Notes: generated from the sequence alone by a model not told the origin. Numbered from the stretch's first letter, positions 5,377 to 59,500 are shown. The stretch is DNA of 64,000 bases from Mytilus edulis (GCF_963676685.1 NC_092344.1:31620001-31684000); one strand, 5' to 3'. A program made the numbers and translations.

Positions 5377-8300
5377 ATGGATCTTCTACGCCGTATTTTG
5401 TACTCTGTTTTTCTGAATTCGATACTCAGCGGTAAGTGTTCAATAACTGTTCAATAACTTTTTTTTATTAGTAATCTATTACATAACTAGAAAATGAAAA
5501 TATATATAATAAGTAAAACCGCCCTTTTTTTTTGCTTCTTACGATCGTGTTAAAAAAATCTCACAAATTTCACCAGCAGTGTGTCAGTAATTTCACAAGA
5601 CATATAATTTATCAATTTTGAGTATTTACGCCAAACTCATGTGAAATATAATCAGATTTCTCTTACAGACGTGTGGCGTAACTCACTCCAAAATAATTTG
5701 TGACATTAGTCATGTTAATATCATATATAGTATGTCATTCTCAGTGTTATACGTAATATTGTGCTGATCTCAATATATATTAGAATTGTGTCTTTATATT
5801 GTACATGGTCCATGTATTTCTGATATGTCAATCATTTAAAATTATCCTATAAAAGTATCATACATTTTAAATATAATATAAAACCTAGTTTCAAATCTTT
5901 TAAAGGGGCACTGGCTGTCAAATTCATGGTCACAGATTTGTTTCAAATTCTCATATTTGATTTATAACAATGTAAAACATTTATCAAAACTACCAAAAGT
6001 CCAAAAGAAACAGTTTACAGAGCATGGGGTAGAGAATATGTAGGTTCGTTTCGTGCGAATTTTAGTCCAGACGCCATCTAATTAACTATCGATTTGACCT
6101 CAAATGACCATATAAGCGATGTAAACATAAGAAAGATATGAATAGATTAAACCAACACGTGCAATTACATTTGTATAGGTCTGTTTGATTTTATTTTATA
6201 GATTAAACATATATGTTTCTCATTGTTTTTAACCGTATAAGAATGATTTTATATGGATCGAATAAGTAATCGAATGGTTTACCGTAGTTTCACTTTCATT
6301 GTTGACATTCTTTTTCTTTAAAAATAACCAGTACACGTACAATGCATGCGTTGTCAATCTCCAGCTAGGGGTTAAACTGAAGTTCACATGAATACGAATT
6401 TAATGAGGTCGACAGATTCACTTGCAAGTGAATTAGCAAATATCAATGTGTCTTCGCTTAATTTGATAAAATTGAACTATTTTGGCTGCTAAAAGCGAAT
6501 TATTATTTCACTATTTCACTTTCATTATTGATTTAACAAAAAAAATCTTACTTTAAATTTTTTATATATCTCGTAGCTAGTCCCCTTTAACGTTACATGG
6601 TTTCACTAAGATTTTTTTGCTATTTTCTATTGCAAAAACAAGTAGTTAATTTTGATTTCAAAATTTGAATTTGATCAAATTTAATATTATGTCCAACAAA
6701 ATGGTTGTTTTATTAATATCTAGCGGCAAAAGCATCATTCATTTTCAAAACGAGAATTTAATGAAAAAGTGTAAGATTTGCTAAATTATGTATTTTGTTT
6801 GTTTTTATAGTGATCAAGACTATAACACAATGTTGACTGCTGTTCCCCTCTTTTTGACATTTTTACCTATTATGTATGTTTGTTTGTTCAAAAAATGTTG
6901 TCAATATAACGGTATGTAATGCGACTGTTATACAAGTTAGAGGTTTAGCTATATAATAAGTTTTATAAAAATCTGGCAACCTTTGAGACGCTAACAAGAT
7001 CGGACTGACGAACAGACACACGGACGTACGCCTAGAAATTCCATGTCCCCTCGCAATGCAGTGTAAAATCAATCAGGAGCAATTCTACAATTCTGTATGT
7101 TGTTCTCTGCCAATGATCTATTTTTCATGAAACTATAGTAATTATGTTTTAGAGGAAAGTCAGATGGGACTAGGAAACAACTTAAATATTTTTTTTATTC
7201 AATGAATTAATCTATCATCACATAATTATGATAACAATATATATATATTAGTAACATGATTACAGCTGAAGGACGCCTCCGGTGCGGGAATTTCGCGCTG
7301 CATTGAAGACCTGTTGGTGACCTTCTGCTGTTGTCTGTTCTATGGTCGAGTTGTTGTCTCTTTAACACATTCCCCATTTCCATTCTCAATTTTATGTATC
7401 AATAGTTTTAAAATCATCTTTGGTAATGTCATTGTAGGTTATGACATTATTAGATATTACTTAGAGTATTAAACACCAATATATATCTCTTTGACGCAAA
7501 TCTATATATAAGAAATATGTAAACAAGACAGTGTGCGTGTGTGTTTGTGTGTGATAATGTTTCCGTCCCCACAACTATATCAATACAACAGTATAACAAA
7601 TATTCGATATTCTATTGCAATTATTTTGTATCAATGGTTCTGATTGGATGACAGTTAGCGTAAAATTCTTTATCTCCTTGTCTGTAACTAAGGAAGCCGA
7701 CATTTTGAATTGCTTAATGTATTGACATGTAATTTCTACAAAAATAAGCCATAAAACTCACATGTTGCACCTAAGAATCTTCTTTTTATCAAATTTTATT
7801 ACATTTTGAAGCGGAACAGAAGCCAGAAAACGCCCACTGTTTATGTTTGACACCGGAAGCATACCTATGACGTCACCTAGTGTAGGGACCAAAGACGATA
7901 ACATCTTTTCGCGGAATTTTCTTTAAAGAAGATTTTAAACTGAAATAATGATTGAAATTTAATTATGAACTTGTTTTGCATTAGAATAGAGATAACTGTT
8001 TGCATTAGAATAGAGATAACTGTTTGCATTAGAATAGAGATAACTGTTTGCATTAGAATAGAGATAACTGTTTGCATTAGAATAGAGATAACTGTTTGCA
8101 TTAGAATAGAGATAACTGTTTGCATTAGAATAATTAGAATAGAGATAACTGTTTGCATTAGAATAGAGATAACTGTTTGCATTAGAATAGAGATAACTGT
8201 ATTATATTAGAATAGAGATAACTGTTTGCATTAGAATAGAGATAACTGTATTGTAGTTGAAGCTTTGCGGACGTCCATCAGTAGTTTTACTGTCGCAAGT

Positions 8301-11300
8301 ACTCAAATATTCTAAAATGTACAGTCCATAAAAACTGACAAAACCAAACGATATCAATTGAAGAAACAAGTGGAAAACTTAATATAATATGTAGAACCAA
8401 AAAGCTAAATAGAAGTTAGTTTAGTTAAAACAGTATTTTATCAAATTAAAGTTAATTGTATTGGACAACAGACGGAGACTATGTAAGCCTTCTACATAGA
8501 AGTATGATACGCTGTGTCATGATTTAAATACTTCTTTTTGTAAAAAAATAAATAATCCGAATTATGTATAAACAATTATAACAATTTATATCTATCAATC
8601 TGACATAGATAAAGATTTGATATTTTTCAGTTTTGAAGAGTATGATTTATACTGTCACTACGTCTTTTCCTACACTTATTTCCAAAAGTAGAATACATAA
8701 ATTAGATTGTGAATAAACAAATACTACATTTTGTTTGGCGAACTTCAATATGTGTCAACCTGAAATAGATAAAGATTTAATATTTTTCAGTTTTGGAAGT
8801 TTATGGTGAATACTGTTACTACGTCCGTACATCCTACTATGGTTATTATTACTACGAATGTGACAGTACAGTAAGTGGGTATGTAACATTCATTTTACAG
8901 GAATTCTACAGGAATTTACAGAAATCTATTTGTCAATAACAAAACTTCGTGACCGAGATTCAAAATTATCGAACATGTAAATGGTGAATACTGCTATGTC
9001 TCCATTTACTTTTTTTTATAATTGTGATATCACATAATTTTTTTTTTTTTTTTTAATTAAAAATTAAAAGTTTATCATCTGAGAATAAACTAAAATTAAA
9101 AATAGTCTCTGAATCTGTAGCCTTAATCATTGCATGAGTTGAACAATTAAAGGGCAGGTGGTTGGGAGTTTTTCTGAAATATGTGATAACTGTACTTTTT
9201 GTTATACCTCATTTGATACACATTTTAATTTTTTTCTTAAATGTGTGAAACCCATGCAATTTTAGATATCAATTATGATAACATAAGCTTTTGAATATAT
9301 TTTCTTCGAGACCGTAATTTTGTTCATTCACTAAGCTTGTTTTTAGAAATCTTACATAACTTAAGACAAATTGACCATTACAGAGAAAATAGTTACTGGA
9401 TTTTTGATTAGCGTTCATAAGAAGATATATAATGTTCTTTGTAGAAGATTGATACGCTATTGATATACATGTACAATCCTTCATCTGGATCAGTATAGTG
9501 TGTTAATATATATGTGTGATTTACATATACTTCTTATATTCATTTATGTATTGATACTTTTTACTTACCGTTTTCAGTGGTTCCATAGCCGGGGCGGTAA
9601 TAGGAACTATCATTTTTATAGTCATCATTGCTGTCATTATTGCTGTGTGTAAAAACCAAAATAGAACAAGGGTGACAACTATTCGTACCCCTCACACTGG
9701 AGGAACTACTGTTATCACACAACAACAGCAACAACAGCAAGGTAATCGTGATAACAGAGAAGTATTACTTGATTTTCATTTATATTTTAAAAAATCGGAT
9801 TTTACTTCGATGCAAATTCTTGTTCACAAAAAAACCCAACATAAATTATTTTTAGAGATCTGCATGTATGTTTGGTATGAAAAAATGTTAAGGTTATTAT
9901 TTATTCCCATCTCGAGTACCGTATATCGTGTTTTTTCACGTGTGTTTAATAAACGCTTTATTCGCGGCTGTTAGTGAAAAGCGAACATTTGGCCTTGCAA
10001 ATTTCCCTGCCAATACCAGCATTGATCGTTGTCTGAAAGTTACATACATTGTGTTAATTATCGAATCGTTTCTGTTGTTCAACAGATGAAAAGAATGGAC
10101 CTACATAATAAAGATCTCTTTTTTCCCCCTAATCATTAATGTCCCTCTTTTTACAACACAGCAATCAGTGACATGGTATGCATTGTTAATAAGCTACGAT
10201 CTGTTAATCGGTGTCATAACCCGTACATTGTACATAAAGTGAAAAAAAATGTAGGGATATTTGTTTATCCGGTAATAATCAATCAAAACCTTAAATTTGT
10301 TAGCATGTGCATAGTCTTTAGTCCTTGGAAATTCTCCAACATATGTGTATTGTTTTCAGGGCCGTAACTAGCCTCGTTTAAAAATGAGGCAAAATGTCTT
10401 CGCCGAACGAAGCGAGGCGAAAAAATTTCGGCGAGGGGTCTGGGGGCCGCTCAAGGCCCCCAGAAGCTCTGAAAAAATTACGCAAAATCCTGCATTCTGA
10501 GCATTTCCCGGACTCTTATCTTACTCTGAAATGCAATTAATATTTAGCTATTTTTTGGGACATTTAAGGACTTAGAGACTTTATCAAAAGAAACTTCAGG
10601 TACCTCTTAAGTTGACACAAGGGATTATCTTGAACTTGTCATAATGATTCTTTCATTGTTGAAGACCCTATAGCGACTATCAAGAAGAAAAACCAAAATA
10701 AATACCCTGACCATTGATTTTTATGTATTTAGTACTTTGTGTACGACTAAATCCTACTCCGGTTCAGTATTCCTTTATTTTTCTATTCAAGCCTTAAGGG
10801 TCTGAACACCACTAAATGCAAGTTTAACCTTTCAATGTAAAAGGTCATTTGGCAATACATTTCTTCAAAAAATATGATACTGGTAGATTGGTGATATCAC
10901 TCTGATCTAACCCATGTCTTCTATCTAGTTTAACTTTTACATATAAAAAAGAGAGCCAGTTGTTTTGTATTCTTTAATATTATGTTTAATCCCCCATAAA
11001 GAAACAACCAATTTTTCTGTGCCCAGAAGCATTGTATCTTCTCAAAACATTTTGTCTCAAAATGTCTGGACAACGGTGAACATGCAGCATTGTTAAACCA
11101 CACAACCGTTCACACCGTCATCGTAGATCTTTCCCAAGTCTTGAGTCTACGCAATGCTGAAAATGATCTTTCGCAACACACAGATGTTACAGGAAGAACC
11201 AACAACAGCTTGAAGACTGTGTGAATGTTCGGATATAAGTCAAAATCAGCTAGTTTAAGCGAATCTTTCAAACTAACGCACTCTCCAGCAGAATGCACAT

Positions 11301-14300
11301 CAACCCTGATCCTCCATCTTTCCACTTCAGCAATAAAATCGTTCTTGTTTGACAAATCTGCTTCAAATGCGTCGCAAATTTTTGTAATGATGTCAGGGGT
11401 CAAGCTGTGCAGATGCTTTGGTATAAGATAATATCTCATCATTTGAGTTTTTAAATCGTTTGGAAATCTTCGTTGTAATTCCGATATGACATGGTCAATG
11501 AACGGAAAGAAAAGGTTAATGCGCCAATGAGACGTTGGGTCACTTTCTAAAGCTGCATTTTCTCGATGAACCTGACGCCCAACACGTCGCTTCGGTCTTA
11601 AATCTACCTCTAGCCTATCAGCAATTCTTTTAGCTCTACTGAACAACTGATTAAATTGTTCATCATTGCGTTTTTCCCCAAGTATTTGTATTAAACCGTT
11701 AGCCTCATCGAAAGCGGTCACCATATTGCAGTCAGTTTTCTGCAAAAAAAGTGTTAAAGGTTTAAGAAGGCTCAACACAAACTGAGCAACAACTATTGCT
11801 ATAATAAATTCAGAATCTTCAAGAAGTCTCCTGAATCCAGCTGCATTTGTTCTGGCATCTGCCGAACTTACGGTTTCAATTTTGCTTATGGCGGAATGCA
11901 CCGACTGATACTGTGCCATTAGTGAAGATACGGCATCAACTCCGGCGGTCCATCTGGTTTCACAAAGTTTGGCAACAGATTAATCCCCACCTTTTTTCAG
12001 TAGTGATACATCTATATTATCACCGTCACTGTCTACACCTTCGAGGAGCTCATTTAACAAGTCTTTATCTCCAGTAAAAGACTTCAGAATTTCTTTCCGT
12101 TTGTAAGATGCACATAGAAACCAAGTCATTTGGCCAACGGATGCCATCAGATTTCGGACCTGTCTGACATTTTTGCAGCTATCTGTGACTACTAAATTTA
12201 AATTATGCGATTTACAGTGAACATAGGGCGCGTTCGGACATTGCTCTTTTATACGTTGTTGAACACCAGAAACTACACCACTCATTACACTGGCACCGTC
12301 GTAACCTTGTCCGCGAAGATTAACCAAGTTCAATCCCCAATTCTGTAAATTCTCAAAAATTGCTTTAGATATATGTTCAGCATCAACTTGACCTGGCTCA
12401 ACAAAGCCTAAGAAGTCTTCACGGATATCGTTAGTGTCGGAAACTACGTACCGCACGCATATTGATAATTGCTCTTTAACGGACACGTCTGTTGTTTCAT
12501 CAGCACACACCGCGAAGAATTTACTTTTCTTGCAATTATCTATCAGGCGTTCTCTAATTTCTAACTCACAGCATTGAATAAGTTCATTTTGCACTTCGGG
12601 TGATAAATAACGCAATGATCTACTTGCCGTCTCAAGAAGCTCTTTCAAAGTAAGATCATATGTTGATTTCCAATCGATGAAAAATTGGAAATTTCCGTCC
12701 TCTTTTTTTAATTCCCTGTCCCAATTACCCCGTAAAGCAATATTTCGTTGACCAAGAACAACAATTATGTCTATGATAGAAATCAATATCGCCCTGTTTT
12801 TAGCAACCCTATTCTCATAACTTTTGCTGAGCGAATAGTAAATGTCCGGTTTACTTCCCTGACAAATTGCAATGAAATCTTTTGCTGCTTCGGCGGCATA
12901 AATGTGAGCATCACTTTCCTCGTGAATTTTCAGAGAAGAGCGTTTTACGCCTACTGCGTTCTTCCAATCACTGAATCCTTTCTTAGCAAATAACGAAGCA
13001 TTATCAGAAAATATCATGCAACATTCACAATATGCGGCATCTTCCGATTATGAGTATCGGAGCCAAGTATATTGAGACTCCCATGAAGGTAAATAGCGTC
13101 TCCCTCCTTTTTGAGGATAGTATTTCACAGGTTTTGTATCAGTTTTAGAAGAAAGGAAGACTAGTTTATCTGCATCTGTCAGTTTATGCTTAAAATGTGT
13201 TGGGTCGAGAGAATCAGACGATTTACTTGAATTCTTCATAGAATCTGACGATTTACTTTCATTTGTCACAGTACATTTTACCAAACAAGTGTTGCTTGAA
13301 CTAATTTCGGTCAATTCCTGGGAAGAAATTTCAGATGTTGATAGACCAGGGGGTGGATACTCGTCCTGAATTGTTCCCAATGCCACAATTTTCGGAGAGG
13401 AGTCGGATGAATCTGCAAAAGAATTCACATTTACACAACGTGAAACAATATAAGTTAAAATTATATCTTTCCTGCACATAAAAATGTATTTCTATATGTG
13501 AGTTATGCCTAGATAGAATAAATGTACCGTATGATTGAGACACGCACACTTTTTTTTAGATGTGTGTATGCTAAAAGACGAAATGCATCTCTTACTCAAC
13601 TAAGATACGAGCAGGCACGGTCGATCAAGATTTGTTTTTAATTCACACCCCGTCCACTTTTGAAATTTCATTAGTCTATATACGCCAGAGTCGGAACTCG
13701 AATATATTTAACGACAACAACCAGTGTTTGCATTGTTTTCTATCTCTTTGACATAACACCCATTTTTTTATTCAAACAAACGTAAGCACTGTCATAACTG
13801 GCAACTCCGACTATGGTGTTTCGATTATTTTTTATTATTAATGCGATGCTTACACAAGCAAGCGTCAAGTTACTATACATCAAGGTTTTTGTCGTCACTA
13901 AATGATAGTTCAAAGGGATATTGGGCCAGATGAAAATTGGGCGGTATATCAGAAATGCTTGTTTTAAAAATTATTCTCTGGATTGGTTTATTTTTAAATA
14001 AACGCGTAGAAAGAACGTTTTGTACTGCCGACACCCGTTAATTTCAAAAACCAATGCAGACTGTAACCAATTTTATTTTGTTCACTAAAAATTGATGCAG
14101 GACTGAGGTTGTTGATTCATTCCAATTATAGGGACAGGGATTGATTGATTGTATTGTTGGTTGCTTAACGTCCAGTGGCAAATATTTCATGCATATTCAT
14201 GACGAGAACAAGTTTATAATATATGCATAGTTAGGTCTTGTCATAATAAAGGCCATTTGGGTTGTTGGAATGATTGTCGGGGAAATTTGGACTGCCGCTG

Positions 14301-15972
14301 GAAAAAATTGAGGATAAATTCGAACAGGCCGGTGTGGGACTCCTATACTTACCATTGACTTCTTTTCTTTTCAAAGAACCAGTCTTCAGCCAATTTTGCA
14401 ATGACATGTTCAAAAACACTTTGCTGATTTCAAACCGTTTTAAAAAATTTGCAAGGAGATGAAATATTAAAATCTGGACCTGCGCAAGCCCCGGTAATTA
14501 TTGTCTTATATCACATGCATTAACAAATATTCCATACATTGCCAAACTATAATTATTAAAATCAATATCATCAACATTATAACAATTTATGACCTGTCAT
14601 ATATATACAGTGATCAAAGGAATATTAGACAACCGAAGCGTTAGACATTAAGAATGATTGATTGATTGCTTGGTTCTTGCTTAAAATCGCATCAGAACAA
14701 CAGCGAATCAGAGTTGGTTTAAAATATTAAATTATTACAATTTAATGTAGTTTTTAAAATGAGACAAGAGGTCCTTCAATATAAGAAAACTCAAGTTGAA
14801 AAGAAAATGACCAGATCTGAATATCATCTACATATTAAATTTCAAAACTAACACTTAGTCTATAGTCACAATAGTAGCACAATAAAGAAACAAAAGTCTA
14901 GACTCTCGTCGTATAAATCAATTTCATATAAATATTTTTTTGTTTGTTTTTGAAATTTCCAGCATGAGGCATTTGCCTCAATTGCCTCAATGTAGTTACG
15001 ACCCTGGTTTTTGTAGATCTTTCTAGTACTCATATTTATTTTGTACTCCATTACCTGTGTGTAAGTCAAGTTTTTAACAATACGGTACACGTTTTGTTTG
15101 TGTGAGTTGTCCCATTCAGTTATTTAATACACAGTGAAATTTTAACCTGAACCACTGGTCATCACATCGACAGAAAAAAAGCCGACGCAAAAAAAAAAAC
15201 CCAAAAAAACCCAAATAAACCCCGATATATACGTTATAATTTGTTTGTCTAGTCATCTGCAAATTAATTTGTTTTTCAATCTTTCCTTGTGTTGTTATTG
15301 TGTAACATATTTTGTGTTTTGTTCATTTACAAAAGTCTACAAATTGAATTCTGAAAACACATGTTTTACAATGGCAGTGAGTAAACGTATCAAGTACCAC
15401 TACAGAAAATTCAATGTGCTAAAATTTTCAAGTTTACAAGCTATAAAATCACATCGATGATCAATTAAGATATTACATATATACATGTATTAGAGACGAT
15501 AATATAATTATGCTATTGAGAATTTATATACTAGGCTGACACGCTGGTCATAAACATTCCTTCATAGTGATCAAGTGAATTAAACTACATTTATGCTGGG
15601 AAAAACTGGATCGAGAGAAAAAGTGCACTTTCGAATCTATACAGAAATGAGAATATTGTGAAAACTGTAGGCAGTTTAAAATAATAATCCCTTTCGAGTC
15701 TTTGAGCATTCAAAGAAATCTCGTACAAAAATTGAACTGACCATTTTTAAAGCTTAATGAGCTTTACGACGAACGCTGGACGATTGAGTAGTAAAAAACC
15801 CAGTATATAATGGATTTATCTAATTTTTTTTGTCATTTCAGCTCCACCACCAATGATGTATGGTCAGTATCCGCAACCAGGCGGCGTTATGTATAATCAA
15901 CCACCAGCGTATCCGCCGCCTCAACCAAACTATCCACCGCCACAAGGAAACTATCCACCACCGAAATACTAG
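5377..15972 (+). CDS. Small type I membrane protein, CYYR1/shisa-like PPxY family, copy 1 (145 aa); exons 5377-5431, 8791-8878, 9578-9741, 15842-15972
   Basis: GT-AG introns of phase 1,2,1 give MDLLRRILYSVFLNSILSVLEVYGEYCYYVRTSYYGYYYYECDSTVSGGSIAGAVIGTIIFIVIIAVIIAVCKNQNRTRVTTIRTPHTGGTTVITQQQQQQQAPPPMMYGQYPQPGGVMYNQPPAYPPPQPNYPPPQGNYPPPKY*. The same structure recurs in three paralogs. Family assignment is from architecture only. Confidence 0.9.
5904..6586. mobile_element. Non-autonomous TTAA-targeting DNA element (Kolobok-like)
   Basis: TTAA|AGGGGCACTGGCT ... AGCTAGTCCCCT|TTAA; absent from the homologous intron position of copy 2 (~22060). Confidence 0.7.
7265..7392. mobile_element. SINE-like interspersed repeat fragment (also 25417-25540, 50070-50330, 59932-60230)
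   Basis: Shared AATTGAGAATGGAAATGGGGAATGTGT...CCCGCACC(C)GGAGGCGTCCTTCAGCTG found in both orientations. Confidence 0.7.
7974..8250. repeat. 24-bp minisatellite (TGTTTGCATTAGAATAGAGATAAC), about 11 copies
   Basis: Near-identical head-to-tail units without spacers; source of ORFs 7877-8182 and 7965-8210. Confidence 0.95.
8631..8690 (+). pseudogene. Degenerate duplicate of exon 2 (loop exon) just upstream of the functional exon 2 of copy 1
   Basis: Same acceptor context (ATAGATAAAGATTTGATATTTTTCAG|TTTTG), followed by TACTGTCACTACGTCTTTTCCTACAC; 1-nt deletion and no matching donor. Confidence 0.7.
10357..15006 (-). mobile_element. Full-length decayed hAT DNA transposon in intron 3 of copy 1
   Basis: TIRs CAGGGCCGTAACTA (10357-10370) and TAGTTACGACCCTG (14993-15006) match 13/14. 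Transposase inside. The empty site is visible in the copy 2 intron (~25850-25870). Confidence 0.9.
10986..14407 (-). pseudogene. hAT transposase pseudogene (ZMYM1/THAP12-like, DUF4371 plus hATC dimerisation); exons 14407-14353 and 13412-10986
   Basis: Motifs ADETTDVS, GQGYDGAS, YVHCKSHNLNL, CETRW, LPVTSVCCERSFSAL and ERLCGLTMLHVH. In-frame TAA at 13048-13050 and 11980-11982; frameshift near 11110. Confidence 0.9.
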
Positions 15973-17486
15973 CAGTTTGTCAACTACAAGCAAACTATCA
16001 ACCAAAATACAAACAGTTGTATATAGTGAAAAAAATATATATTCCATGTAATTTGTTATCTTATATCCTTAATTGTATTATCAACTGATTGAGACATACA
16101 TGCCTAAAAAGAATATATAATGAATTGTTTTTTTCTTTAATTAAAACCTGCTGATATAATAACTGTAAAACAAAAATTGAAATTTTGATTTTCATGATAG
16201 CTTAAAGGTATCTTTGATGTATCTGTGATGAGTTTATTAACACTCTGTGACTTCAAAAATGTCCTCAGGAAGGAAATTTTAATATTTATTCGACCTTAAT
16301 AGAGTTCGACGAATAGTTACTTTATATTTCAGATTAATGAGATGCCATCGTTTTGAGCAATCAAATACATGTATCGCAAAAGAAGGAAATCAAAAATGAA
16401 ATTGAAAAAAGCACTGAAAATGTTGACCATCCAGGTAATTTTTCCTGGCTTGAGGACAAATTATATGTGTTGTATTTTATTCGATTGGTTGGCCAAAACC
16501 GGATATACATTTAGTGTTTACCTTGGTCAGCATGCAAACGAAAATTGATACTCAACTATTCACAATAAATCTTGTAAAATCATTGTCATGTAAAGAACGC
16601 AAACTAAGCTATGAATTGATCGTGTTAAGCTTATTAAAAAGTAAAATCCCAAAAATACCGAACTCTGAGGAAAACACGAAAAGTCTCTAATCAAATGGGA
16701 AAATCAAAAACTCAAACACATCAAACGAATGGATGACAACTGCCATGTTCCTGAATTGGTACCATCATTTTCTGATATAGAAAATGGTGGATTAAACCTC
16801 ATTTTAAATATAGTAGCTTCTTTGATTAGGTACTTAACCATTCCATCTGATACAGTCAGCAAAAATTAAATTGTCATCTTTAAAGTATATAAATTGAAAA
16901 GGGAAATAGGGTATATGTTTATTTTTATGAAATGAGTCCACGTACTTTCGTTACAGATAAAATGTGAAATCTAACTCTGGCATCTAAGTGTGATATAAGG
17001 GTACTTTTCGTTACCCTTAGACATCTCCGAATTAATTCAATAAAATACTTCCGTTTGTCGGCGAGATGGTAATGATTTGCTCAGTGCACCGATGTTTGTT
17101 TTCCGTATTCGAAAACCATATGTTTCAACATTGGTGTGAACATATAAAAAATACGATAACAAATATTTCGCTCCGACTCAGGTCCAAGGTTTTTTTTAAA
17201 GCAATCTTTCAAAAAGAAAAATAATAATGCGTATTTGCATTCTTTTAAAGTGAAATATGTGTCTAAGCAAGCGATTCAAGGGTATTAATTCACTAAAACA
17301 TATCAGATATTTTTAATGAGTGTTTGTATATGTTACGCACATACAAACTTAAAGTTCAATAAACCTTTTGTGATATTTGATTTTATCTATAGTCAGTTTT
17401 TAAAGAATTTGACAAAATTACACAAACTATAATTATTTAGAAGTTAATTGCTATTTAAATTCAGACTAAAGTAAAAGAGAGAAAAT

Positions 17487-17541
17487 ATGGATCTTCTACG
17501 CCGTATTTTGTACTCTGCTCTTCTGAATTTGATATTCGGCG
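17487..17541 (+). CDS. Duplicated (alternative) first coding exon of copy 2, signal peptide MDLLRRILYSALLNLIFG
   Basis: 55-nt exon with ATG and G|GTAAGT donor, phase 1, nearly identical to 19059-19113. Confidence 0.65.
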
Positions 17542-17622
17542 GTAAGTGTTCAATAACTGATGCATCGAATAATAAATAACCATTTATTAGTAATGTATAT
17601 ATAACATAAAAACAAAAGCATG

Positions 17623-17663
<41 letters not shown>

Positions 17664-18619
17664 CAGTTTGAGTTAAATGTAAAACCTTATACCTTATTTT
17701 AATGGCGCACTTTTGTTTTTCTACTAACAGTCGTTTTAAAATCATCTTATAATTTTGTTTTACCAACAGTGTGTCAGTAATTCCACCAGACATATGGTTT
17801 ATACCTGTTGCGTATATACGCTTAATTCTTGTAAACATTTCATCAGATTTCTTTTACAGAATTGTGAACTAACTTACTATGAAAAAACTTGTGATATGAA
17901 ATTCTTGATGTATTACATCAATCGCGTTTATATTATATATAACATGTCATGTCCAGCGTTATACATATTTATTATTGTGCTATCTCACATTGATATTCGT
18001 TCTCGCTATATGATAATAGTATGTCTGTGTATGGAATAAGGTCCATCTTTGTCTGATCTGTCCAATATTAAAAGTTATCTTTTAAGTTGCATTTTGAATA
18101 AAGTATCATACATTTTAAATATACTTATGGAAAAAAGTATTGCAACACCTTGATTTTTTAAACCTTGGAAAAGCAGCCTCCTTTTTGGGATAAAATTTGA
18201 TAAAATATTTGTATAATAATATTGAGACATTGTTTGTGATAACATTGGCAGTAAAGTGAATTAAAAAAAATGTATGAAAAATATGTTTTTATAAACCACA
18301 ATTTTGATGACAAAATGAAGTAAATTTTGTACAAAAAAATCCATTTTACAGTTTTTCTGTAACCGAACTTTACAATGTCAGACATTTCAAAAATAAATCG
18401 TAAGATGAGTGTTCACATCATGGTTATATAAAAAATACGATAACAACTATTTCGCTCCGACTCAGGTCCAAGTTTTTTTTTTAAAAGCAATCTTTAAAAA
18501 AGAAAAAATAGTAATGCGTATTTGCATTATTTTAAAGTGAAATATGTGTCTAAGCAAGCGATTTAAGGGTATTAATTCACTTAAACATATCAGATGTTTT
18601 TAATGAGTGTTTGTATAAA

Positions 18620-18898
18620 TTCAAATATATATATTTTATTGCTAATCAAAGCGCCCACAAGGAGCAGAACAATCAACATTAATTACATACAAATGATTAC
18701 AAGTGATTCAATATGATTAATTAAGACACAATGTTATATAAAAAAAAAAAAAACAACCAAACCAAACTAAAAAATATTTATTAAGACAAGTACAAGAATA
18801 CAACAAGCACAATGTTTAATAATATAAGGGGGGTCACTGGGCATTTCTATATCTATATATCATTTAAGGAAACTTTCCTATATGAGAATACTTTCATA
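18620..18898 (-). mobile_element. Short insertion resembling a LINE 3' end
   Basis: Present only in the second duplication unit (compare 17325-17335); AATAAA near its end on the minus strand. Confidence 0.5.
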
Positions 18899-19058
18899 TA
18901 TATGTTACGCATATACAAACTTAAAGTTCAATAAACCTTTTGTGATATTTGATATTATCTATACTCAGTTTTTAAAGAACTTGACAAAATTACACAAACT
19001 ATAATTATTTAGAAGTTAATTGCAATTTAAATTCAGTCTAAAGTAAAAGAGAGAAAAT

Positions 19059-28145: not shown

Positions 28146-28610
28146 AAAAAAAAAAAAGAAAAAAGAAAGAAAAAAAAAATAACTGTCTGATATTTTATTT
28201 TCAAATTATTGTAACTTTTCCAATTTAATTTTTCGTAAAATCATTCTCCTTAAATATTATTTCTTTTTAAACTTTTGTTTAATTTAAACAGTATGTTTCA
28301 ATACGTTACATTGACCTTAAAATCAGAAACTTTCTGAATTTGAAATTCGACAACCTTTACTATTTCAATACTGAGGTAATTCATAAAAGTCCATTAACAG
28401 TACTCTTAAGCATAATAATCGAGTCTAATATATTATTCATGTCTATGTTTATTTGGTTGAGTGTCCCCATTCGAAAAACTATTATGATAATATTAGTTTA
28501 TCTGCATCAGCGACAAGGAGGACTTAACTCATAATAGTTTCATCTTGGATATGATACTGCTTCTAGTGCTTGTTCAACAATGAACATTATTGTTTATGCT
28601 GTTCATCATA

Positions 28611-46089: not shown

Positions 46090-46157
46090 TTATCAAAGGT
46101 ACCAGGCTTATCTTTTGTTACGCCAGACGCGCATTTCGTCTACACAAGAGTCATCAA
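46090..46157 (-). ncRNA. Truncated, mutated type I hammerhead (retrozyme-like fragment)
   Basis: Minus strand reads TTGATGA CTCT TGTGT AGAC GAAA TGCGCG TC TGGCGT, followed by CCTGGTACCTTTGATAA as at 63658-63675. Confidence 0.7.
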
Positions 46158-46196
46158 TAATAGCATTTATCCGTGACAAGATGCAAAATTGTCGAC

Positions 46197-46690
46197 AAGG
46201 CATTCCCATGAAAGCCTGCTGTGCCCCTCTTCTTGTCGCCTTTATCCTTTATTCTTATGAGGCATACAGAAAATTCTTGTGAAAAAGAAAGGTATCATAA
46301 AACGTTACCTTCTGCTATGTAGATGATGTTCTCTCACTAAATAATTTAAAATCTAATGACGATGTTGAACGCATTTATCTAATCTAACAAGAAAGGATAA
46401 AGGATACATCAGATACTGTTAAGTCCGTCTCATATCTTAATTTACATCTAGGAATTTACTATGAGGGTCGGTTGAAAACTTTACGACAAAAGAGGAGATT
46501 CCATCTTTCCAATTGTGAATTTTCCATTTTTATGTAGCAACATTTTAGCACCGCCTTCATACGGAGTATATATATTTTCAATTGATATGATATTTCCGGG
46601 CTGGTATTTCTTATCATGATTTCCTTGATAGCGGGTCATAAGGAAGCTTTAAACCAAGAATTCTAAATGGCGAAGTTGAAATCATACAGT
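46197..46690 (+). mobile_element. Degenerate PLE RT fragment in intron 2 of copy 3
   Basis: Collinear with 51378-51890 (GIPM, YVDDV, FPIVNFPFL) with stops and frameshifts. Confidence 0.8.
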
Positions 46691-48606
46691 TCTAAAGTTG
46701 CTCATAATGTCTGAAATGGTAGCATTAATATTTGTCTAGGTTGTACGATTGTTCGACAAGCATAATGGCGGTTTCTGAATTGTGTGGTCAATACACAATA
46801 AATATGTGAATCTTTTTTCTGTACTTGTTTTTTTATTGATTTAAACAAAATCTGAAATCCATGCAATTTTAAAAAGTGATTCCAATAAAGATTTACACTG
46901 TCTTTTGCATTTCTTGTCTACGAGTAAGTTGTTTTGTTCCTGCGTTTTGCTGATTTTAAGAAATCATACATTTTATCAAATTACATGTATATTTCCTGAC
47001 TTTATTATAATTAAATTCATAAGAAATAAATATAACGTTCTTTGGAATAGACTAATAAGTCGGCCATTAAAAAGGCTACATAGTATATAGCTGTTAAAAA
47101 GTAACAAATGGATTTAGAGAAAACACATACGGATTACAAACCAAAACCGAGGTAAACACATCAACTATAGGAGGATAACAACGAAACAACAGAACACTGA
47201 AGTGCAACAAAAACAAATAACAAATAACATACATAAAAACAAACCATTAGATAACAACTGTCGTATTCCTGACTTGGTACAGGACATTTTAAGAAAAAAA
47301 TTGTGGGTTGAACCTGGTTGTGGCTAGCAAAACCTCTTGCATAAACAATTCTTCATATGGATCAGTATAAGTTGTTTATATATCTTATTCCCGTATTGTT
47401 CTTCTATAGACATATTCATTGATACTTTATATTTATCTTTTCAGTGGTTCCATAGCCGGAGCGGTAGTAGGGACTATAATTTTTATAGTCATCATTGTTG
47501 TTATCATTGCTGTGTGTGAAAACCATAACAGAACAAAGGTGACAACTATTCATACCCCACACTCTGTCGGAACTGCTGTTATCGCACAACAACAGCAACA
47601 ACAAGGTAATCTCAATGACAGCGAAAATATAACTTGATTTCAATTAATATGAAAGAACAATCGGGTTTACTGCTGGTTTCGATACATATTCTTGTTTACA
47701 AAAAAAAATGAAATCACTTAATATTGTTAAGACTAGTAATTACAGAGTTCTAGTATGTGATCAAAGGCAAAAACCAAAACAAAGATGCAACAATTTGTTT
47801 ACGAAATATAATATGAAAATAAGCAGATGTGGTATAATTGACAATGAGACATTCTCTCCAAGAAAAATAATAATATCGAAGTTAACAGATATATATCTCT
47901 ATACAACAATGAGTAAAAAACAAAATGACAACAGTAAAACATTCCGAATTTGAAAACTTACGATCTGATTTAGATAAGATTGGAAGTTTGTTCATAATTC
48001 CACATTTCGTTTTATCAATTCTTATCGTCGTGTTCTGCGTTTCACTTGAATTTTATAATAAAATGTTTTTGTTTGTTCTGTATCAAGAACAATTAAAAAA
48101 AAGCCATGTGCTAAAATTTTCAATACAGTTTACAAGGTAAAATATCACATTGAGACATTATAAAAAGAGAACTTGGTTGTTTGCCGTTCGCTTCACGTCC
48201 AGAGGCAATAATTACATTTTATTATACTTCAGTTATCATTTTCTATATAAAATAAGTAAACAATATTTTCATTGTTTTGCAAATTACAAGCTTTGAACTA
48301 TTGGACCGGTCAAAAATTTCCAACTATAACATCTTGGAGAAACTATCTGACCGCAAGCGTCATAAAATTTCGCGAAATTTTAAATACAGCTAAGCGATTG
48401 GAGGATTTTAAAAATAACGCGGGAGTAACGACGTCGTGTTTTACCTATTGTATCTAGTATAGGGTTGACGCCGGTGCAAGACGTAGCCTTAGCATTTGAA
48501 CATTTGTTTGAAGTAAACGTTATGGTTTGGTTTCTTCTTTTTAATATTACGATAGTTGATTTATCCCCGCCATTTATGTCTGTTGTCTTTGTGGATATAA
48601 TAAAAC

Positions 48607-48743
48607 ACTTACTGACTGGATATTCGTGGAATAGTAAGTTTATTGTCCCGAGGATAAATCTATTGCACTCGGCTACGCCTCAGGACAATAGTTGCTCCTC
48701 GGGACAATAAACTTACTATTCCACTCACACCCAGTCAATAAGT
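48607..48743. repeat. Long hairpin/foldback
   Basis: GTGGAATAGTAAGTTTATTGTCCCGAGGA and TCCTCGGGACAATAAACTTACTATTCCAC flank the loop CTCGGCTACGCCTC. Confidence 0.85.
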
Positions 48744-50992
48744 ATACACTATGGCATTTAGTCTCTGGTTGAGCGTTATGACATTGGCCATTATACCACA
48801 TCTTTTATTCTCATACTTACAAATCTTAACTGACAAGTTTAATATAAACGTAGGCTATTTAAACATTAGCCCCTTTTCAGCGTTTTAAGCATTTTCTTAA
48901 TGAGAAAATTTTGTAAAAGAAGTTGTAATGGCAATGTTGTTCAGGTGTCTTTAACCACCTTAGTACTCACTCAAATAATGATTCTTTATGAATGAAACTC
49001 CAATGGGAAAACCAACATTCAATATATTATCATTAAGACAGCAAGCTTTTCAAGGAAGTTACATGGATCAACAGGAAACACAGTACAACTCTATATCGTT
49101 TACCAAATTAAGTATTATATGATAACTTTGGCGATTTATCAAATCAACCCCTTTCCTGTTTTCAAAAAATCCCCTGAATGAGAACTTTTTTTGAGGTTCC
49201 TTATCCAACTACAATTCATGCGAAGAACTATTAAGTATAGATAAAACTACAATGTACAAATTAATTTTCAATATAATTATATTACTATGACTAATGTGTT
49301 TACCCATGATATGTTTTAATATTTGTGTCATTTCAGCCCAACTACCGATAATGTATGGTCAGTATCCACAACCAGGTGGTAGTATGTATACTCACCCACC
49401 AGCTTATCAGCCGCCTCAAGGAAACTATCCTCCGCCGCAAGAAAACTTTCCACCAAAATACTAACAGTTATCAATAACAAGTCTAACAAGCAGACTTCCA
49501 ATCAAAAGAACTGTTTTAAATTCATAAACTACTAATTCTATATAAAGTGTAAATAAACCTATTTTCCTGTAATCAAAAACCTTCGGTTTTAATGAACTTA
49601 AAACAAAAATCAAAATTTGCTGCTTATCTTGCTGATGTTTGATACACCTATAGTGAGTTTGATATATTTTGCGTCTACAATAAAATAAATAAAATTTTAA
49701 TACACATTTGGGCAAATATAGAGTTCGAAGAGTCGAACATATTTCAGATTATGAGGTACCATCGGTTTAGTACAATTACACATCGTAAAATAAGTATATC
49801 AAAAGTAAAAAAGACAAAAGCACTGAAAATATTGATTATTCTAGTACTAATTTTTCTGAATTGAGATCAAATTGTATTTAATTTTATATATGTTTTATTT
49901 GATTCTTTTGCTCGAGGCCATTTTGTATTTCGTTAATCATTTGAACTCGTGGTTCATCTTAACTAACGAATATTGGCACCCAGCGATTAACAACAAATTC
50001 TCCGTATATCGTAAAAGTAATAGGCTGTTTGAAATAGATTGTCTTAAGCTTATCAGAAATATGGTATAGAATTGAGAAGGGATATGGGGAATGTGTCAAA
50101 AAGAAAACAACTCAACCAAAGAGCAGAAAACAGCAGAAGGTCACCAACGAGTCTTCACCACAGCGAGAAAATCCCGCACCAAGAGGCGTGCTTCAGCTGG
50201 CCCTAAACAACAATGTGTACTAGTTCAGGGATAACGGACATCATACTTAACTCCGAAATATATAAATGAACTAAAATTGAAAATCATACAAGACTAACAA
50301 AGGCCAAAGCTTCCTGACTTGAGACTCGATCAAAAATGGATCTTCAATTAAACACCTTATCATTGTATCGGTCTGCAATATTCAAATATTTATTTACATT
50401 AGAAGTTCGAATGAAAATGTCAAGATTTCTGTCATACATATCATTAAATATTTAGTTGAAAATGTCAATATCTTATTTCATATATTCAGTATCAATTATA
50501 TATGTTGTGTGCAAGGTCGTTTTCACAACTGTATATTGATGAAAAACCAACAAACCTACCATAAACATTTAAAAAAAACGCTATTCACGTCATGATTATT
50601 TAATGAGATATGTTATATTGTGAGCGATATTTGCCTCACTAAATCCATAAAATGGTTGATGTATACAGATTGATATTTATGTAAGTCGTAGATACACAAT
50701 TTTGTGATTTGATGCATTTGGTTTTGAACAAGCTTCCAAAGGTATTTCAAATGGAATAGCACATTCAAAATATTACATTGATGTTGTTTATCGAGCCCGG
50801 AAATTTAATTACGATCTGTGAAAACCTAGATAAATTAGATCTTTGCAAATCATTTTTATTGGTATAGAAATTGATTTAGTGACCAGTAATTCAAAACTGT
50901 AAAAGTTATTATTGCTATACACATATGTACTTTTAAGAGTACTGCAATCTCTCAATACCTATATTTTGGCATTACATTGCTTTTCTGTGACT

Positions 50993-54677: not shown

Positions 54678-57600
54678 ATGGATCTTCTACGACGTATTGT
54701 GTACACCGCTTTTCTGAATTTAATATTCAGTGGTAAGTGTTGATCATCTGTTACTCTCTATATTCTATTCATTATCTTGTTTTTGCAATTCATAACAAAC
54801 CCAAGAAATGTACATAGATAAAAAAAGTTTATGTATAATGCAATTCCATATTTTATATGTGAGCTGTCCTTTTTCATCGGTCGTATTTATATAATTTACT
54901 GTTAATCTTTATGGTTACTCGAGACCTAAAATTGAAAATCATCAAGAATTTACCACATATTTATGTAAGCCATTATTTCAGACTTCTTTAAGAGTAGCAT
55001 ATATATCTTAACTTCATAAATTTTAGTAGAATTGAAATTCTTGAATTATCTTATTTGAATTAAGTATAGTAAATCTTGCTGTGAAGAATATTTAACAAAT
55101 AAAATCCGACCTTTCCAATATATTTTAGAAAGGGGAAATTCATAACAACTAATAAAACCAAATTTTCTTAATTAACGGAACGAGTTATAATATTTCAGAC
55201 TTGAAACAGTAATTTTCCCAACCAAATATCGGGTTAAATTTATTTTTTTAGCTACCTGAACCTCCTACTTTAATGACTGTTGAAAATAATAATAAAATAG
55301 TATTATTAAGAATTGATTGATTGTTATTCAACTTTATACACTACCAAGAATTTACTCACGTTTTTTTGGTACATTTCTACCCTCGTATATATCAGTACTG
55401 TTCGGCAAGACAGAAAACTTGTAATGTTATACTTTCTGTTTATTCAGTACTGTTTTGACAGTACTGTTTCAGTACTGATTTTGACAGTACTGTTTCAGTA
55501 CTGATTTTGACAGTACTGTTTCAGTACTGATTTTGACAGTACTGTTTCAGTGCTGATTTCGTCAGTACTGATTCAGTTCTGATTTCGTCAGTACTGTTGC
55601 AGTACTGATTTCGTCAGTAATGTTTAAGTACTGATTTTGCCGGTAATGTTTCAGTACTGATTGTGTACTGTAAGTATACCGATGTTACATGTTAAAAGAG
55701 TAGTTCAGTGCATTATTGGTCTAGTTCTGTACAAAATAGGTTAATTACATTGTATTTATATCTGAGTATCATGTCCTCTTCCTGCACTCAACTTGCCACT
55801 GGATCACATAACATCCATCCAACCATCCATCTTCTCAAAATTAATATACCGAGTTCCAATGTTCAATTCTTGTTCAATATGTTCTGATTTGATTAAAGCA
55901 AGATACAAACACATGTAATATGGTATTGTCAAATAGAAATATTAATAAGATCTTTCTAAAAACATAAACCTTATAAAATAACCACACAAGATGCATTTCT
56001 GACAAAAAATATGACATTAAGCCAGAATATTAAAAAAAAACTAAAGTAGCTATCGAAGTGCTGAAACTAAAGCAAAACCAAATCAGGACAACAAAAATCA
56101 GAAAAATAAAAAAAAACATAACGAAAACAAAATGTCACGATATAGAAAATGAATGGAAATGGGGTAAGTGTCCAAAAAGAACAATTAATTCACCCCAAAT
56201 ATACAAAACAACCTAAGACCTTTTAAATAGGCATCAATGTATGCATTCAAATGTAAACATTGTATCTAATTTAAAGGTAAATAAACTAAATTTTACCTGA
56301 AATAAAAACAAATATAAACCTTAAAAAGGTGCACATTTACGTAATTAAAGAGAGGACATCTTCCGTTATGAACACAGTGATCTATTGATAAATGCACTCA
56401 AAAGAGCAGGTACATGTTTATATGTTGAACAGTAATGAAAAATTCCCTACAGATACAGTACTGATATAATTAGTGTTATAATGAAACAGTACTGACGAAA
56501 TCAGTACTGAAACAGTACTGTCAAAATCAGTACTGAAACAGTACTGTCAAAATCAGTACTGAAACAGTACTGTCAAAATCAGTACTGAAACAGTACTGTC
56601 AAAGTCAGTACCGAAACAGAACTGTCAAAAACAGTACTTAATAAACAAAAAGTATAACATTACAAGTTTTCTGTCTTGCCGAACAGTACTGATTTATACG
56701 AGGGTAGAAATGTACCAAAAAAAACGTGAGTAAATTCTTGGTAGTGTAGAAGATGTAGTTTAATTGGCAAAAGGACAAGTATCCACTAACTATGCTGTTT
56801 GTTTAACATCCAGTGGTAAATAATACATGCGTATTGCGTACATAAAATATGCGTGTTCTGTTTGTCGACCGTTTTGAAGGAGGGTAATTTTGGACTACCA
56901 TTTGTAAACGAAAGCACATACTTATCTGATATGAAACCTTATATTCCATGCCTTTTGTGTAACAAAATGAAATCGGAAGCCATATAAACAAGCCTACAAT
57001 TCTGACTGTTCTGCCTATATTTATATTTCCAGAAACGGTGGCTTCATTGTTTTACGAATGATGATAATGGCATGATAATATCAAATGGTTTTGTGGTTTG
57101 AGAAAGAAATACCATAACAAATGAGCACATACAGAAGACGGACACTCAGTGAAAGCATTTTTGCATAATTGCCTATTTTTGCAATCTTGACCGTTTGATA
57201 TTAAAATATCCAAGACCCATTTCATGGACAAATAAATGTCCATAAACATACCTGTTAAATAATGATTAAAGAATTTCGTAACAAAAACTCAGTCCACCTT
57301 GTATCACTTGGTTTTATAATCACTATCGTAAATATAAATGGCGTTAATAAACAATTTAACATAGTATAAGATTCATATAAGATGTCTACCATATGCCTAG
57401 CTTTTAATTTAAATACGACTCACTTACGAGATTCAGGTATCAGATATGTGTCGAATGTAAAACAATTGTGTTCTTTTTTTTTGGTTATGCATGTTAATGT
57501 AAAATACATATTATTTTTCAGTTGTGAAGGTTTATGGTGAATACTGTTACTACAGTTATTACTATTCTGATTCTGAATGTGATTACACAACAAGCGGGTG

Positions 57601-59500
57601 TGTTTAATTTTCTTTTTTCTTTTTTTATTGTACCATAAAATACTAAATTTCGTTTTAATTTATGAATAAACTTGTTGGCTGTTTTGTACACAAGTAAACA
57701 GGAGTGGATATAAAACAAAGACTCCTGTATTGTCTGATCAGTATTCTTAGAAGATGCCAACTTCGTATTCTGTTCTCGTTTAAATATTTTTTTTATATTT
57801 TTTTTTTATGGTGAAACCAAAGTAGTTTAAGTACATATTCTGATAGTCACACTATTTGTGGAAAATATTTCATACAGAGACTGTCGTTGTGATCCTTCGC
57901 TGATTTCTAGACTTGTTGGCGACGGCTTAACGTCATCAGACAGAAGGCCAATGTATACTTTAGACGATAATAAAATTATGTTAATTAGAAATGATAACCT
58001 TTTTGTATTTTGTACAAGACTGACACATAACAGTGCATCTGGATAAGTATGTTTTGTTTATATATATGATCCGTATACTATATATAGAATATTTATTAAT
58101 ACTTAATACTAACTATTTTAGTGGTTCCATAGCCGGTGCGATAGTAGGAACTATCATTTTCATAGTTGTCATAGTTGTTATAATTATAATTTGTAAACAG
58201 AAGAAAACTAGGACGAGACGTATTCATACCACTCCACACACTGGTGGAACTACTGTTATCACACAACAACAACAACAAGGTAAACTTAATTACAGAAGTT
58301 AAAACATGATTTTTAATATTATAAAAAGAATGGTTGATTTCGAATATAAATGCATATACTTGTGCAAAAAAGTGGAGAGAGATGTGCACAGATTTGCATG
58401 TCTGATAAGTATGAAAACATAGGTTGTTAACAGTCGTATACAAAAAACTACACTGTGAAATCAAAGCCAAAAAAACATAATGTATAATGATTTGTTTAGG
58501 AGCTATAGGATTGACAGATTTTGTATGTTTGTCATTCGACATATCTTTTAACTTTTTCTCATCACGAGTATTATTCATTTGTTTGTGCCTCGGCAAATAC
58601 ATTTCTATCACAATTTTTGAAAGGCGTGTTACTTGGTGTTAGGTTTTATGTTTAGTGTTTTGTGCATCTTTATTGAATTTTAAAATCAATATTTTGTTTG
58701 GCCATTGCTATTGAGAACAGTAGCAGAACAGTTACAAATAATTTCAAGTGCTAAAATTAAATTTTTGGTTTACAATGACAAATGTTACATCGACATCTTG
58801 CATTATAAAAGGTGAAAATGTTTGCAGGACGTCCAATATACGTTTTCGGCCAAAAACCATACATACTTTTAAAACTATTTTGTGATTGCAAATTAAAATC
58901 TTCCTTTGTATGGATGAAAGCATTTTCTTATGTCACAGAAGGTGTATTAAAACCTGATTTTATAGCTTGCTAAACCTCTCACTTGCATGCAAGTTGCATA
59001 CAATTCCTTTGTGTTGACAACGAGGTGTGAACAAAACAAATAGACACAAAAGGTAAAATGTCAAAAAGGGGTCCAGCAGTCAACATCGTGTTATAACCTT
59101 AATCCCTATAAAAACTAACAAATATGTAACAAGAAACAATAAAAAGGCATATTGACAAAGCACATTAGCAATTTGAAAAATGAAAGAATATATATTAACC
59201 GTAGCACAATTTACAAAATGACGGAATTTTTAAGTTCAGAGACACGTTAAATTAAACAACTGTAAAAAAAAATAAAAAAAAATATAATAAACAATAAGAT
59301 GGCAGGCATTCAGGAACCGCTACAACTTATGAGTAGTACGATGGATATGTTTTAAGATTTTTGTCATTCCAGCTCAACCACCAATGATGTATGGTCAGTA
59401 TTCGCAACCAGGAGGCCCGATGTATAATCAACCACCAGCGTATCCGCCACCTCAACCAAACTATCTACCACCACATGGAAATTATCCTCCAAGATATTAA
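54678..59500 (+). CDS. Small type I membrane PPxY protein, copy 4 (138 aa); exons 54678-54732, 57522-57597, 58122-58279, 59373-59500
   Basis: Open spliced frame; loop EYCYYSYYYSDSECD, TM GSIAGAIVGTIIFIVVIVVIIIIC, Q5, tail NQPPAYPPPQPNYLPPHGNYPPRY*; AATAAA shortly after the stop. Confidence 0.9.
55339..56746. mobile_element. Non-autonomous CACTA/EnSpm-like element with 26-bp subterminal arrays
   Basis: TA|CACTACCAAGAATTTACTCACG ... CGTGAGTAAATTCTTGGTAGTG|TA. About 100 bp of near-perfect TIR, then inverted arrays of CAGTACTGTTTCAGTACTGATTTTGA. Confidence 0.85.

Follow-up and report, generated by a model that had tools for sequence, protein, structure and literature searches.

A 64,000-nucleotide (nt) stretch of the Mytilus edulis genome (GCF_963676685.1 NC_092344.1:31620001-31684000, in our coordinates G000:C1:31620001-31684000), referred to as the window in the following, contains a tandem family of genes for very small putative membrane proteins with a single tyrosine-rich loop outside and a PPxY motif-containing tail inside, and raises the question of what these minimal proteins are and why their loops differ. 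The initial annotation, made from the sequence alone, had regarded them as a diversifying set of recognition modules and as an undescribed system. Here we find that the window comprises four units of a larger Mytilus array, in which at least 11 genes are arranged in tandem. Since the array proteins show homology to CYYR1 and Shisa-like proteins and have relatives in oysters and a scallop, the array has, as far as can be judged from sequence comparison, arisen by lineage-specific expansion within a known superfamily, from a branch with fewer cysteines, and is not an undescribed system. The encoded proteins are probably divergent, cysteine-reduced Shisa-like adaptors of the CYYR1 branch, i.e. 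very small type I membrane proteins which would dock NEDD4-family ligases via their PPxY motifs and whose loop would be under relaxed constraint.

Gene structure and extent of the array

Self-BLAST of the window together with translation revealed four colinear sets of four conserved blocks, corresponding to four predicted four-exon genes on the plus strand, designated A (5377-15972), B (19059-26801), C (44902-49464 or 45648-49464, depending on which of two copies of exon 1 is taken) and D (54678-59500). AG/GT borders are present at 12/12 introns, the intron phases are uniformly 1, 2, 1, and the total coding sequence lengths of A-D (438, 432, 432 and 417 nt) are each divisible by three. The four paralogs thus share their exon structure, membrane segment and tail, as had been proposed.

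Exon 1 (55 nt) contains the start codon and an 18-codon hydrophobic leader and is followed by the phase-1 donor GTAAGT. Exon 2 (76-88 nt) completes the leader, adds the loop together with a short stalk of Ser and Thr, and has a phase-2 donor. Exon 3 (158-164 nt) encodes a G(S/T)IAGA motif, the membrane helix, an invariant Cys, a juxtamembrane stretch that is basic and rich in Thr, and a Gln run before a phase-1 donor. Exon 4 (128-131 nt) encodes the tail, which is rich in Pro and carries PPAY and, at its C-terminus, PPKY or PPRY. In gene A, exon 1 (5377-5431) with the start codon, the leader MDLLRRILYSVFLNSILS and the phase-1 donor equals the N-terminus of the RefSeq protein P0035, and exon 2 (8791-8878, AG..GT borders) encodes the leader end VLEVYG, the loop CYYVRTSYYGYYYYEC and the stalk DSTVSG. 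Exon 3 (9578-9741) contains GSIAGAV, the membrane helix (residues 48-77 in the AlphaFold2 model), the invariant juxtamembrane Cys, the KNQNRTRVTTIRTPH segment and the Gln run; exon 4 (15842-15972; translation, borders) encodes the Pro-rich tail with PPAY and the C-terminal PPKY and ends with the stop codon TAG. The complete exon model of gene A agrees with P0035 at every residue.

In gene B, exon 1 (19059-19113) was placed by translation and borders, exon 2 with the loop CYYYYSSYYGYYYEC (24405-24489) by motif scan and borders, and exon 3 with the membrane helix and juxtamembrane segment (25134-25294) as well as exon 4 with the PPAY, PPRY tail (26671-26801) by translation and genome search. The same lines of evidence apply to gene D, with exon 1 at 54678-54732, exon 2 with the short loop CYYSYYYSDSEC at 57522-57597, exon 3 at 58122-58279 and exon 4 (PPAY, PPRY, stop TAA) at 59373-59500. 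Gene C has two copies of exon 1, a (44902-44956) and b (45648-45702), both identified by translation and borders, followed by exon 2 (45903-45990; motif scan, translation), exon 3 (47445-47605) and exon 4 with PPAY and PPKY (49337-49464), the latter two from translation and genome search. Its loop, CYYVYSYTYFYT*YEC, is interrupted by an in-frame TAA. Among the units of the window only gene C has a stop codon, A, B and D being intact, and it is probably a pseudogene in this assembly; its M. trossulus counterpart, P0014, is intact.

A six-frame motif scan detected exactly four loop-encoding segments on the plus strand of the window (8814-8861, 24428-24472, 45926-45973 and 57545-57580). The loop peptides given in the initial annotation were recovered exactly, in each case with VYGEY before and D after the loop. 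The proteins encoded by A-D are 138-145 amino acids long and combine a hydrophobic leader, one Tyr-rich loop of the type Cys-(10-14 residues)-Cys and one membrane helix with a Gln run and a tail in which PPAY is followed by PP[KR]Y at the C-terminus. The two loop cysteines are the only ones in the ectodomain of each protein, in line with the proposed tiny single-loop ectodomain, and the dual PPxY tail, likewise proposed, is present in all four proteins (PPAY plus PPKY or PPRY). By inspection of the sequences, the leader is hydrophobic with an RR n-region and a V-x-G site, and a 24-residue hydrophobic stretch is also present. AlphaFold2, run with a 19-sequence alignment, predicted a leader helix (residues 2-22), two strands (26-31 and 38-43), a helix (48-77) and a disordered tail with a mean predicted local distance difference test score of 55.6. 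The two strands would place C27 near C42, a low-confidence arrangement that can serve as a lead only.

The extent of the array was determined by a search of the 1.37-Gb assembly with exons 3 and 4 and by reading 194 kb around the window. The family of four described initially is correct for the window; the real array is larger and comprises at least 10 close units and one divergent unit over about 165 kb (G000:C1:31579409-31743800). The 10 close units, all on the plus strand, span positions 31,585,123 to 31,743,800 of C1, with G1-G3 upstream of the window, A-D within it and G8-G10 downstream. The eleventh, more divergent unit at 31,579,409-31,581,600 has the same plan; its loop is GGCYYHYQYEYHEC, its helix is followed by CCC, and it contains PPPIY. 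In 10/10 close units, exon 2 has retained its phase-2 donor, and the open frame, all splice sites and the phases are intact in nine of them. G10 has a truncated tail and has lost both PPxY motifs, and G9 has lost the terminal motif and ends with PPRF.

It could be argued that the units are mostly decaying or non-functional duplicates and that their models are artefacts of a low-complexity, TAY-rich repeat. The stop in the loop of gene C, the tails of G9 and G10, the degraded exon-2 fragments beside exon 2 of A and B, and clusters of the A and G8 proteins that lack transcript-derived members would fit such a decay. However, nine of the 10 close units keep their frames, splice sites and phases, the ratio of nonsynonymous to synonymous substitution rates (dN/dS) is well below 1 in the loop frame, membrane segment and tail, and exons are more conserved than introns. 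Furthermore, single-unit orthologues exist in three other Mytilus species, one-to-one in M. galloprovincialis and M. trossulus and as related models in M. californianus. We therefore regard general decay as the least probable of all explanations considered here.

Besides the array itself, a separate contig (C1335:1-32640) copies the region from -3582 to 29064 in window coordinates; the two are 99.93% identical and differ by 23 indels and 0 mismatches. Its interpretation as a second haplotype was rejected, as 0 mismatches mark it as an assembly duplicate that carries no allelic information. This duplicate is also the reason why RefSeq lists the gene A protein under two accessions.

Relationship to CYYR1 and Shisa-like proteins

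Gene A is already modelled in RefSeq, where P0035 (XP_071151728.1) is named 'protein shisa-5-like [Mytilus edulis]', and oyster relatives are named CYYR1-like by NCBI. The genes are thus already known in the sense that they have been modelled and named by homology, and the initial view of an undescribed system does not hold. The match of P0035 to the Pfam CYYR1 family PF10873 reaches 36.6 bits (cut-off 31, E 7.6e-9) and spans profile positions 12-141 of 149; with 35.6 bits, the M. galloprovincialis orthologue P0009 is above the cut-off as well. When a profile of the Mytilus family (A1) was compared by hhalign to a profile of six-Cys bivalve CYYR1/Shisa-like proteins (A2), a probability of 99.3% with an E value of 3.1e-20 was obtained over 84 columns. 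These columns take in the loop, the helix start and the juxtamembrane segment, with the membrane helix contributing part of the score. The first loop Cys is aligned with Cys 2 and the closing Cys with the last CC of the C*C*CC*CC pattern. The resemblance to CYYR1 and Shisa noted at the outset is borne out by both comparisons.

An HMMER search with exon 3 among 1.84 billion representatives returned eight proteins only, and a word-indexed search starting from one exon-3 match led to annotated models in M. edulis, M. galloprovincialis, M. trossulus and M. californianus. P0012 and P0013 are equal to the exon models of G8 and G1, respectively. In the ESM Atlas, which is based on a protein language model, the clusters nearest to P0009 are mollusc shisa-5-like, CYYR1-like and WBP1-like proteins. 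The family profile furthermore retrieved oyster and scallop relatives with E values of 1e-11 to 4e-4. The oyster and scallop proteins have small Tyr-rich ectodomains, with two to three Cys in the oysters, and an SGG(S/T)IAGAV motif. The bivalve CYYR1-like set (P0018 and P0021/P0029 from Saccostrea, P0025 from Ostrea, P0017/P0039 from Mytilus) has a leader, a Tyr-rich ectodomain with two to three Cys, (S/T)IAGAV at the helix start and a PPxY tail often ending with PPPKY, but differs from the array proteins by an identity of only 31-45%, another Cys spacing and the lack of a Gln run. A homologue search from P0026 reached molluscs only and not vertebrate CYYR1. Our literature search found no paper on CYYR1 in Mytilus, on cysteine and tyrosine-rich proteins in bivalves or on shisa-5 in mussel.

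Several findings speak against a simple assignment to the CYYR1 branch. The whole-protein Pfam scoring covered database proteins (P0035, P0009 and others), with full-length B, C and D outside this set, and only the gene A protein and its orthologue P0009 passed the CYYR1 cut-off. P0011 (28.8 bits), P0038 (27.1), P0037 (26.1), P0012 (24.2), P0036 (20.7), P0010 (20.6) and P0013 (18.7) remained below it, with four full-length unit models among them spanning 18.7-28.8 bits, and P0002, P0014 and P0015 gave no match to this profile. Single exons of A and B were sub-threshold as well (E 0.07-0.28). The six-Cys pattern C*C*CC*CC, which defines Shisa-like ectodomains, is absent, two Cys being present only. 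Finally, when proteins are clustered at 90% identity, those of A and G8 group with NCBI models only, with no transcript-derived Logan entries, which fits a low or restricted expression.

With the Pfam CYYR1 profile, the whole genome gave exon-level sub-threshold matches only. Pfam Shisa_N (PF13908) matched neither P0035 nor any other array member, and the distant relatives P0032 and P0034 only below threshold. The Pfam WBP-1 match reached only 16.5 bits and was on a mis-spliced model, and matches to Pfam RCR on the tail and helix were weak (at most 21.9 bits, cut-off 27.8).

In its overall plan CYYR1 resembles the mussel proteins. Within about 145-155 amino acids, a signal peptide and a single membrane helix, both putative in mussel, are combined with a short ectodomain rich in Cys and Tyr and with a Pro-rich tail that carries several PPxY motifs, and the gene A protein is covered over nearly the whole profile. 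The mussel proteins differ in having two ectodomain Cys in place of a multi-Cys domain, with Tyr-richness retained, two PPxY motifs compared to three, a Gln run after the juxtamembrane segment and a single juxtamembrane Cys. They are also encoded by at least 11 tandem copies, whereas CYYR1 is a single gene in vertebrates. Shisa and Shisa-like (STMC6) proteins share the single-pass topology predicted for the mussel proteins, the small Cys-containing N-terminal ectodomain and cytoplasmic PY motifs, which in these adaptors recruit NEDD4-family ligases; their defining C*C*CC*CC pattern is, however, cut down to two Cys in mussel. CYYR1 has been assigned to the Shisa-like STMC6 superfamily (PMC5578492), which, according to Pei and Grishin (2012) as cited there, includes WBP1, WBP1L and VOPP1. 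NDFIP1/2, Drosophila Commissureless and yeast Rcr1/2 are likewise small membrane proteins whose PY motifs recruit Nedd4/Rsp5-type ligases for cargo sorting, but they are functional analogues without demonstrated homology and lack a Cys/Tyr loop, and NDFIP proteins are multi-pass.

As suggested by these motifs and by analogy, the most likely function of the array proteins would be that of PPxY adaptors for NEDD4-family ligases. The leader would be cleaved near the VYG-E junction, leaving an ectodomain of about 25 residues that may fold as a disulfide-stapled, Tyr-rich beta-hairpin, and palmitoylation may occur on the invariant Cys where the helix ends on the cytoplasmic side. Via their two PPxY motifs, the proteins could dock WW domains of HECT ligases of the NEDD4 family at endosomes, the Golgi or the plasma membrane. 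By analogy to human CYYR1 and WBP1L, such docking would control the activity or stability of the ligase or the ubiquitin-dependent sorting of neighbouring membrane proteins. The PPxY motifs of human CYYR1 bind WW domains of WWP1, WWP2 and ITCH at late endosomes, and CYYR1 sends WWP1 to lysosomes for degradation (PMC11399591); WBP1L, a palmitoylated protein, also binds ligases of the NEDD4 family and lowers CXCR4 (PMC6991692). The coupling of PPxY motifs to WW-domain ligases put forward initially stands as reasoning, with human CYYR1 as a precedent. Genes for NEDD4-family ligases are present in the M. edulis genome, with WW and HECT exons clustered on C4 at 25.28 Mb, on C5 at 11.62 Mb, on C9 at 15.19 Mb and on C2 at 89.07 Mb, and the ligase gene on C5 has four WW domains, of which WW4 is of ITCH/WWP-type sequence. 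A complex prediction with P0035 residues 100-145 and WW4 (L054:3313-3432) gave a score of 0.05, which speaks neither for nor against binding.

Two further observations concern related models. In M. galloprovincialis and M. californianus, several tandem units appear in NCBI models (P0011, P0037, P0036 and P0010) as isoforms X1-X7 of a single locus. In P0011, exon 1 stems from the A unit but exons 2-4 stem from a G8-like unit, which could be either read-through splicing across units or a prediction artefact. P0007, a protein of 241 amino acids from transcript-like Logan contigs, contains the helix, juxtamembrane and PPxY tail module under a much larger, unrelated ectodomain, and a similar exon is located on C4 (L013, G000:C4:6542026). 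The cytoplasmic module is therefore common beyond the family with the minimal loop.

Overall, new here is a two-Cys, tandemly expanded form of a known CYYR1/Shisa-like PY-motif adaptor. This family was called vertebrate-specific when it was named; it has a cysteine-reduced form with a putative Tyr-hairpin in bivalves, which Mytilus has amplified to at least 11 genes. With loop length and sequence varying and the helix and the ligase-docking tail constant, the array forms a natural series in which the role of the tiny part on the lumenal or extracellular side can be addressed.

Variation and selection in the loop

To assess selection, four phylogenetically independent sister pairs were used (A/B, C/G8, D/G9 and G1/G2). 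Nonsynonymous differences were found at 16 of 91 sites in the loop core and at 1 of 75 in the EYCYY..EC frame (Fisher p=0.0005). The contrast between fixed flanks and a variable centre, as described in the initial annotation, is thus real; the centre is not free-form, however, as it contains 3-8 Tyr per 7-11 core residues and mostly a central Y-G-Y. In 36 pooled paralogue pairs, dN/dS was 0.02 in the frame, 0.18 in the tail, 0.25 in the loop core, 0.33 in the membrane helix, 0.49 in the juxtamembrane segment, 0.53 in the leader and 0.80 in the stalk. Purifying selection thus acts on the frame of the loop as well as on the membrane segment and the PPxY tail.

According to the recognition module reading, the array is a diversifying set of minimal modules whose variable Tyr/Ser loops bind different extracellular, e.g. 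microbial, targets and direct them to ubiquitination and endocytosis in an immune-type function. The presence of at least 11 tandem units whose loops of 10-14 residues vary in sequence and length within a fixed frame could be taken in its favour, as could a nonsynonymous rate in the loop core twice that of the rest of the gene (p=0.009). When synonymous changes are considered, this difference disappears. In the four sister pairs, the ratio of nonsynonymous to synonymous differences per site (pN/pS) is 0.51 in the loop core compared to 0.42 in the rest of the gene, with counts of 16:7 and 103:70, respectively (p=0.50). The proportion of synonymous differences (pS) is raised in the core as well, at 0.34 compared to 0.21, pointing to mutation or alignment effects rather than selection.

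Comparison to introns and between species leads to the same result. Between paralogues, exon 2 is 76-90% identical and its 200-nt intron flanks 43-91%, mostly 50-80%; in most paralogue pairs its conservation equals or exceeds that of the introns, and the loop is no more diverged than introns. Between matched units of different Mytilus species, protein-level identities are 87% for exon 1, 88% for exon 2, 96.5% for exon 3 and 90.6% for exon 4, so that the signal-peptide exon diverges as fast as exon 2. Stalk and signal peptide vary as much as the loop or more. The sole difference between the A units of M. edulis and M. galloprovincialis does fall in the loop, but it affects one residue only, and the loop of G8 shows no difference, i.e. 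both loops are nearly unchanged across species. Moreover, the loop composition is narrow, Tyr being accompanied by Ser, Thr and Gly. Diversifying selection on the loop is not supported, and we consider immune-type recognition modules very unlikely.

A variant of this idea would be a set of germline-diversified minimal surface hairpins in which each loop has its own extracellular or membrane ligand and hands it to NEDD4-type ligases for endocytosis, possibly with a choice of units by cluster-level splicing; if so, the array would amount to a novel type of recognition system in invertebrates. The splicing part derives from the NCBI models in which exon 1 and exons 2-4 come from different units. 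This variant appears to us slightly less probable still. At present, the array gives no indication of a new mechanism or of an immune system.

A different role for the tyrosines themselves must also be weighed. Mussels make extensive use of Tyr-to-3,4-dihydroxyphenylalanine (DOPA) chemistry, and the ectodomain might be a substrate and not a binding surface, in which exposed tyrosines are oxidised (DOPA/dityrosine) or sulfated for cross-linking or adhesion, e.g. in foot or mantle, the PPxY tail serving turnover only. The high Tyr content of the core is kept and TAT and TAC interchange freely, at a core pS of 0.62, arguing that selection keeps composition and frame and not the exact sequence, which would fit this idea. 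On the other hand, similar proteins occur in oysters and a scallop, which lack mussel-type byssal chemistry, and vertebrate CYYR1 at late endosomes is also Tyr-rich (PMC11399591). A substrate role of this kind is likewise very unlikely and seems less probable than either version of the recognition idea, though not as improbable as general decay.

For the CYYR1-branch adaptors favoured here, the best reading of the loop differences is a relaxed constraint after duplication, perhaps together with slippage in runs of TAY codons that gave length changes of one and four codons. The hairpin would mainly need the EYCYY...EC frame and a high Tyr content, and the differences would not stem from selection for diversity. 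Two points run counter to this explanation. G3 and its M. trossulus counterpart P0002 differ at 5/14 loop positions and at 1/53 in exon 3, one fast-looking case that could also be taken in favour of recognition modules. In addition, the power of the selection tests is low, since each gene contributes 7-11 codons and the aligned tract is of low complexity.

Repeats and decayed copies around the genes

Decayed partial copies of the loop exon adjoin the functional exon 2 at positions 8588-8681, approximately 8977-9012 and 24579-24640. The upstream copy in gene A is 84.6% identical to 8748-8825, is closest to exon 2 of gene C and contains frameshifts and stops, and 'VNGEYCY' fragments are located downstream of exon 2 in A and B. 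Judged by their sequence, these copies look like pseudo-exons and not like alternative exons.

The region around gene B has undergone recent local duplications (17142-17638 compared to 18426-19209; 19196-20061; 22263-23617). The one upstream of gene B is a segmental duplication with 94-97% identity that carries a second exon 1 on the plus strand (17487-17541), as identified by self-BLAST and translation. Intron 1 of gene B contains tandem repeats of 441 and 680 nt with 97-99% identity. Intron 3 of gene A harbours a remnant of a hAT-type transposase on the minus strand (11110-13479), in which the open reading frame at 11980-13017 matches DUF4371 (73 bits) and that at 11110-11919 the hAT dimerisation domain (26.5 bits). 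Because of this remnant, intron 3 of gene A is 6.1 kb in length compared to about 1.4 kb in gene B.

An Rfam search of the window at gathering thresholds gave no matches. A sub-threshold match to Hammerhead_1 (RF00163; 27.6 bits, gathering score 34, E 1.6e-4 in a 701-nt search) lies at 63601-63644 on the plus strand, within a repeat that has inverted copies elsewhere, and related copies are present at 28605-28805 and 46085-46156.

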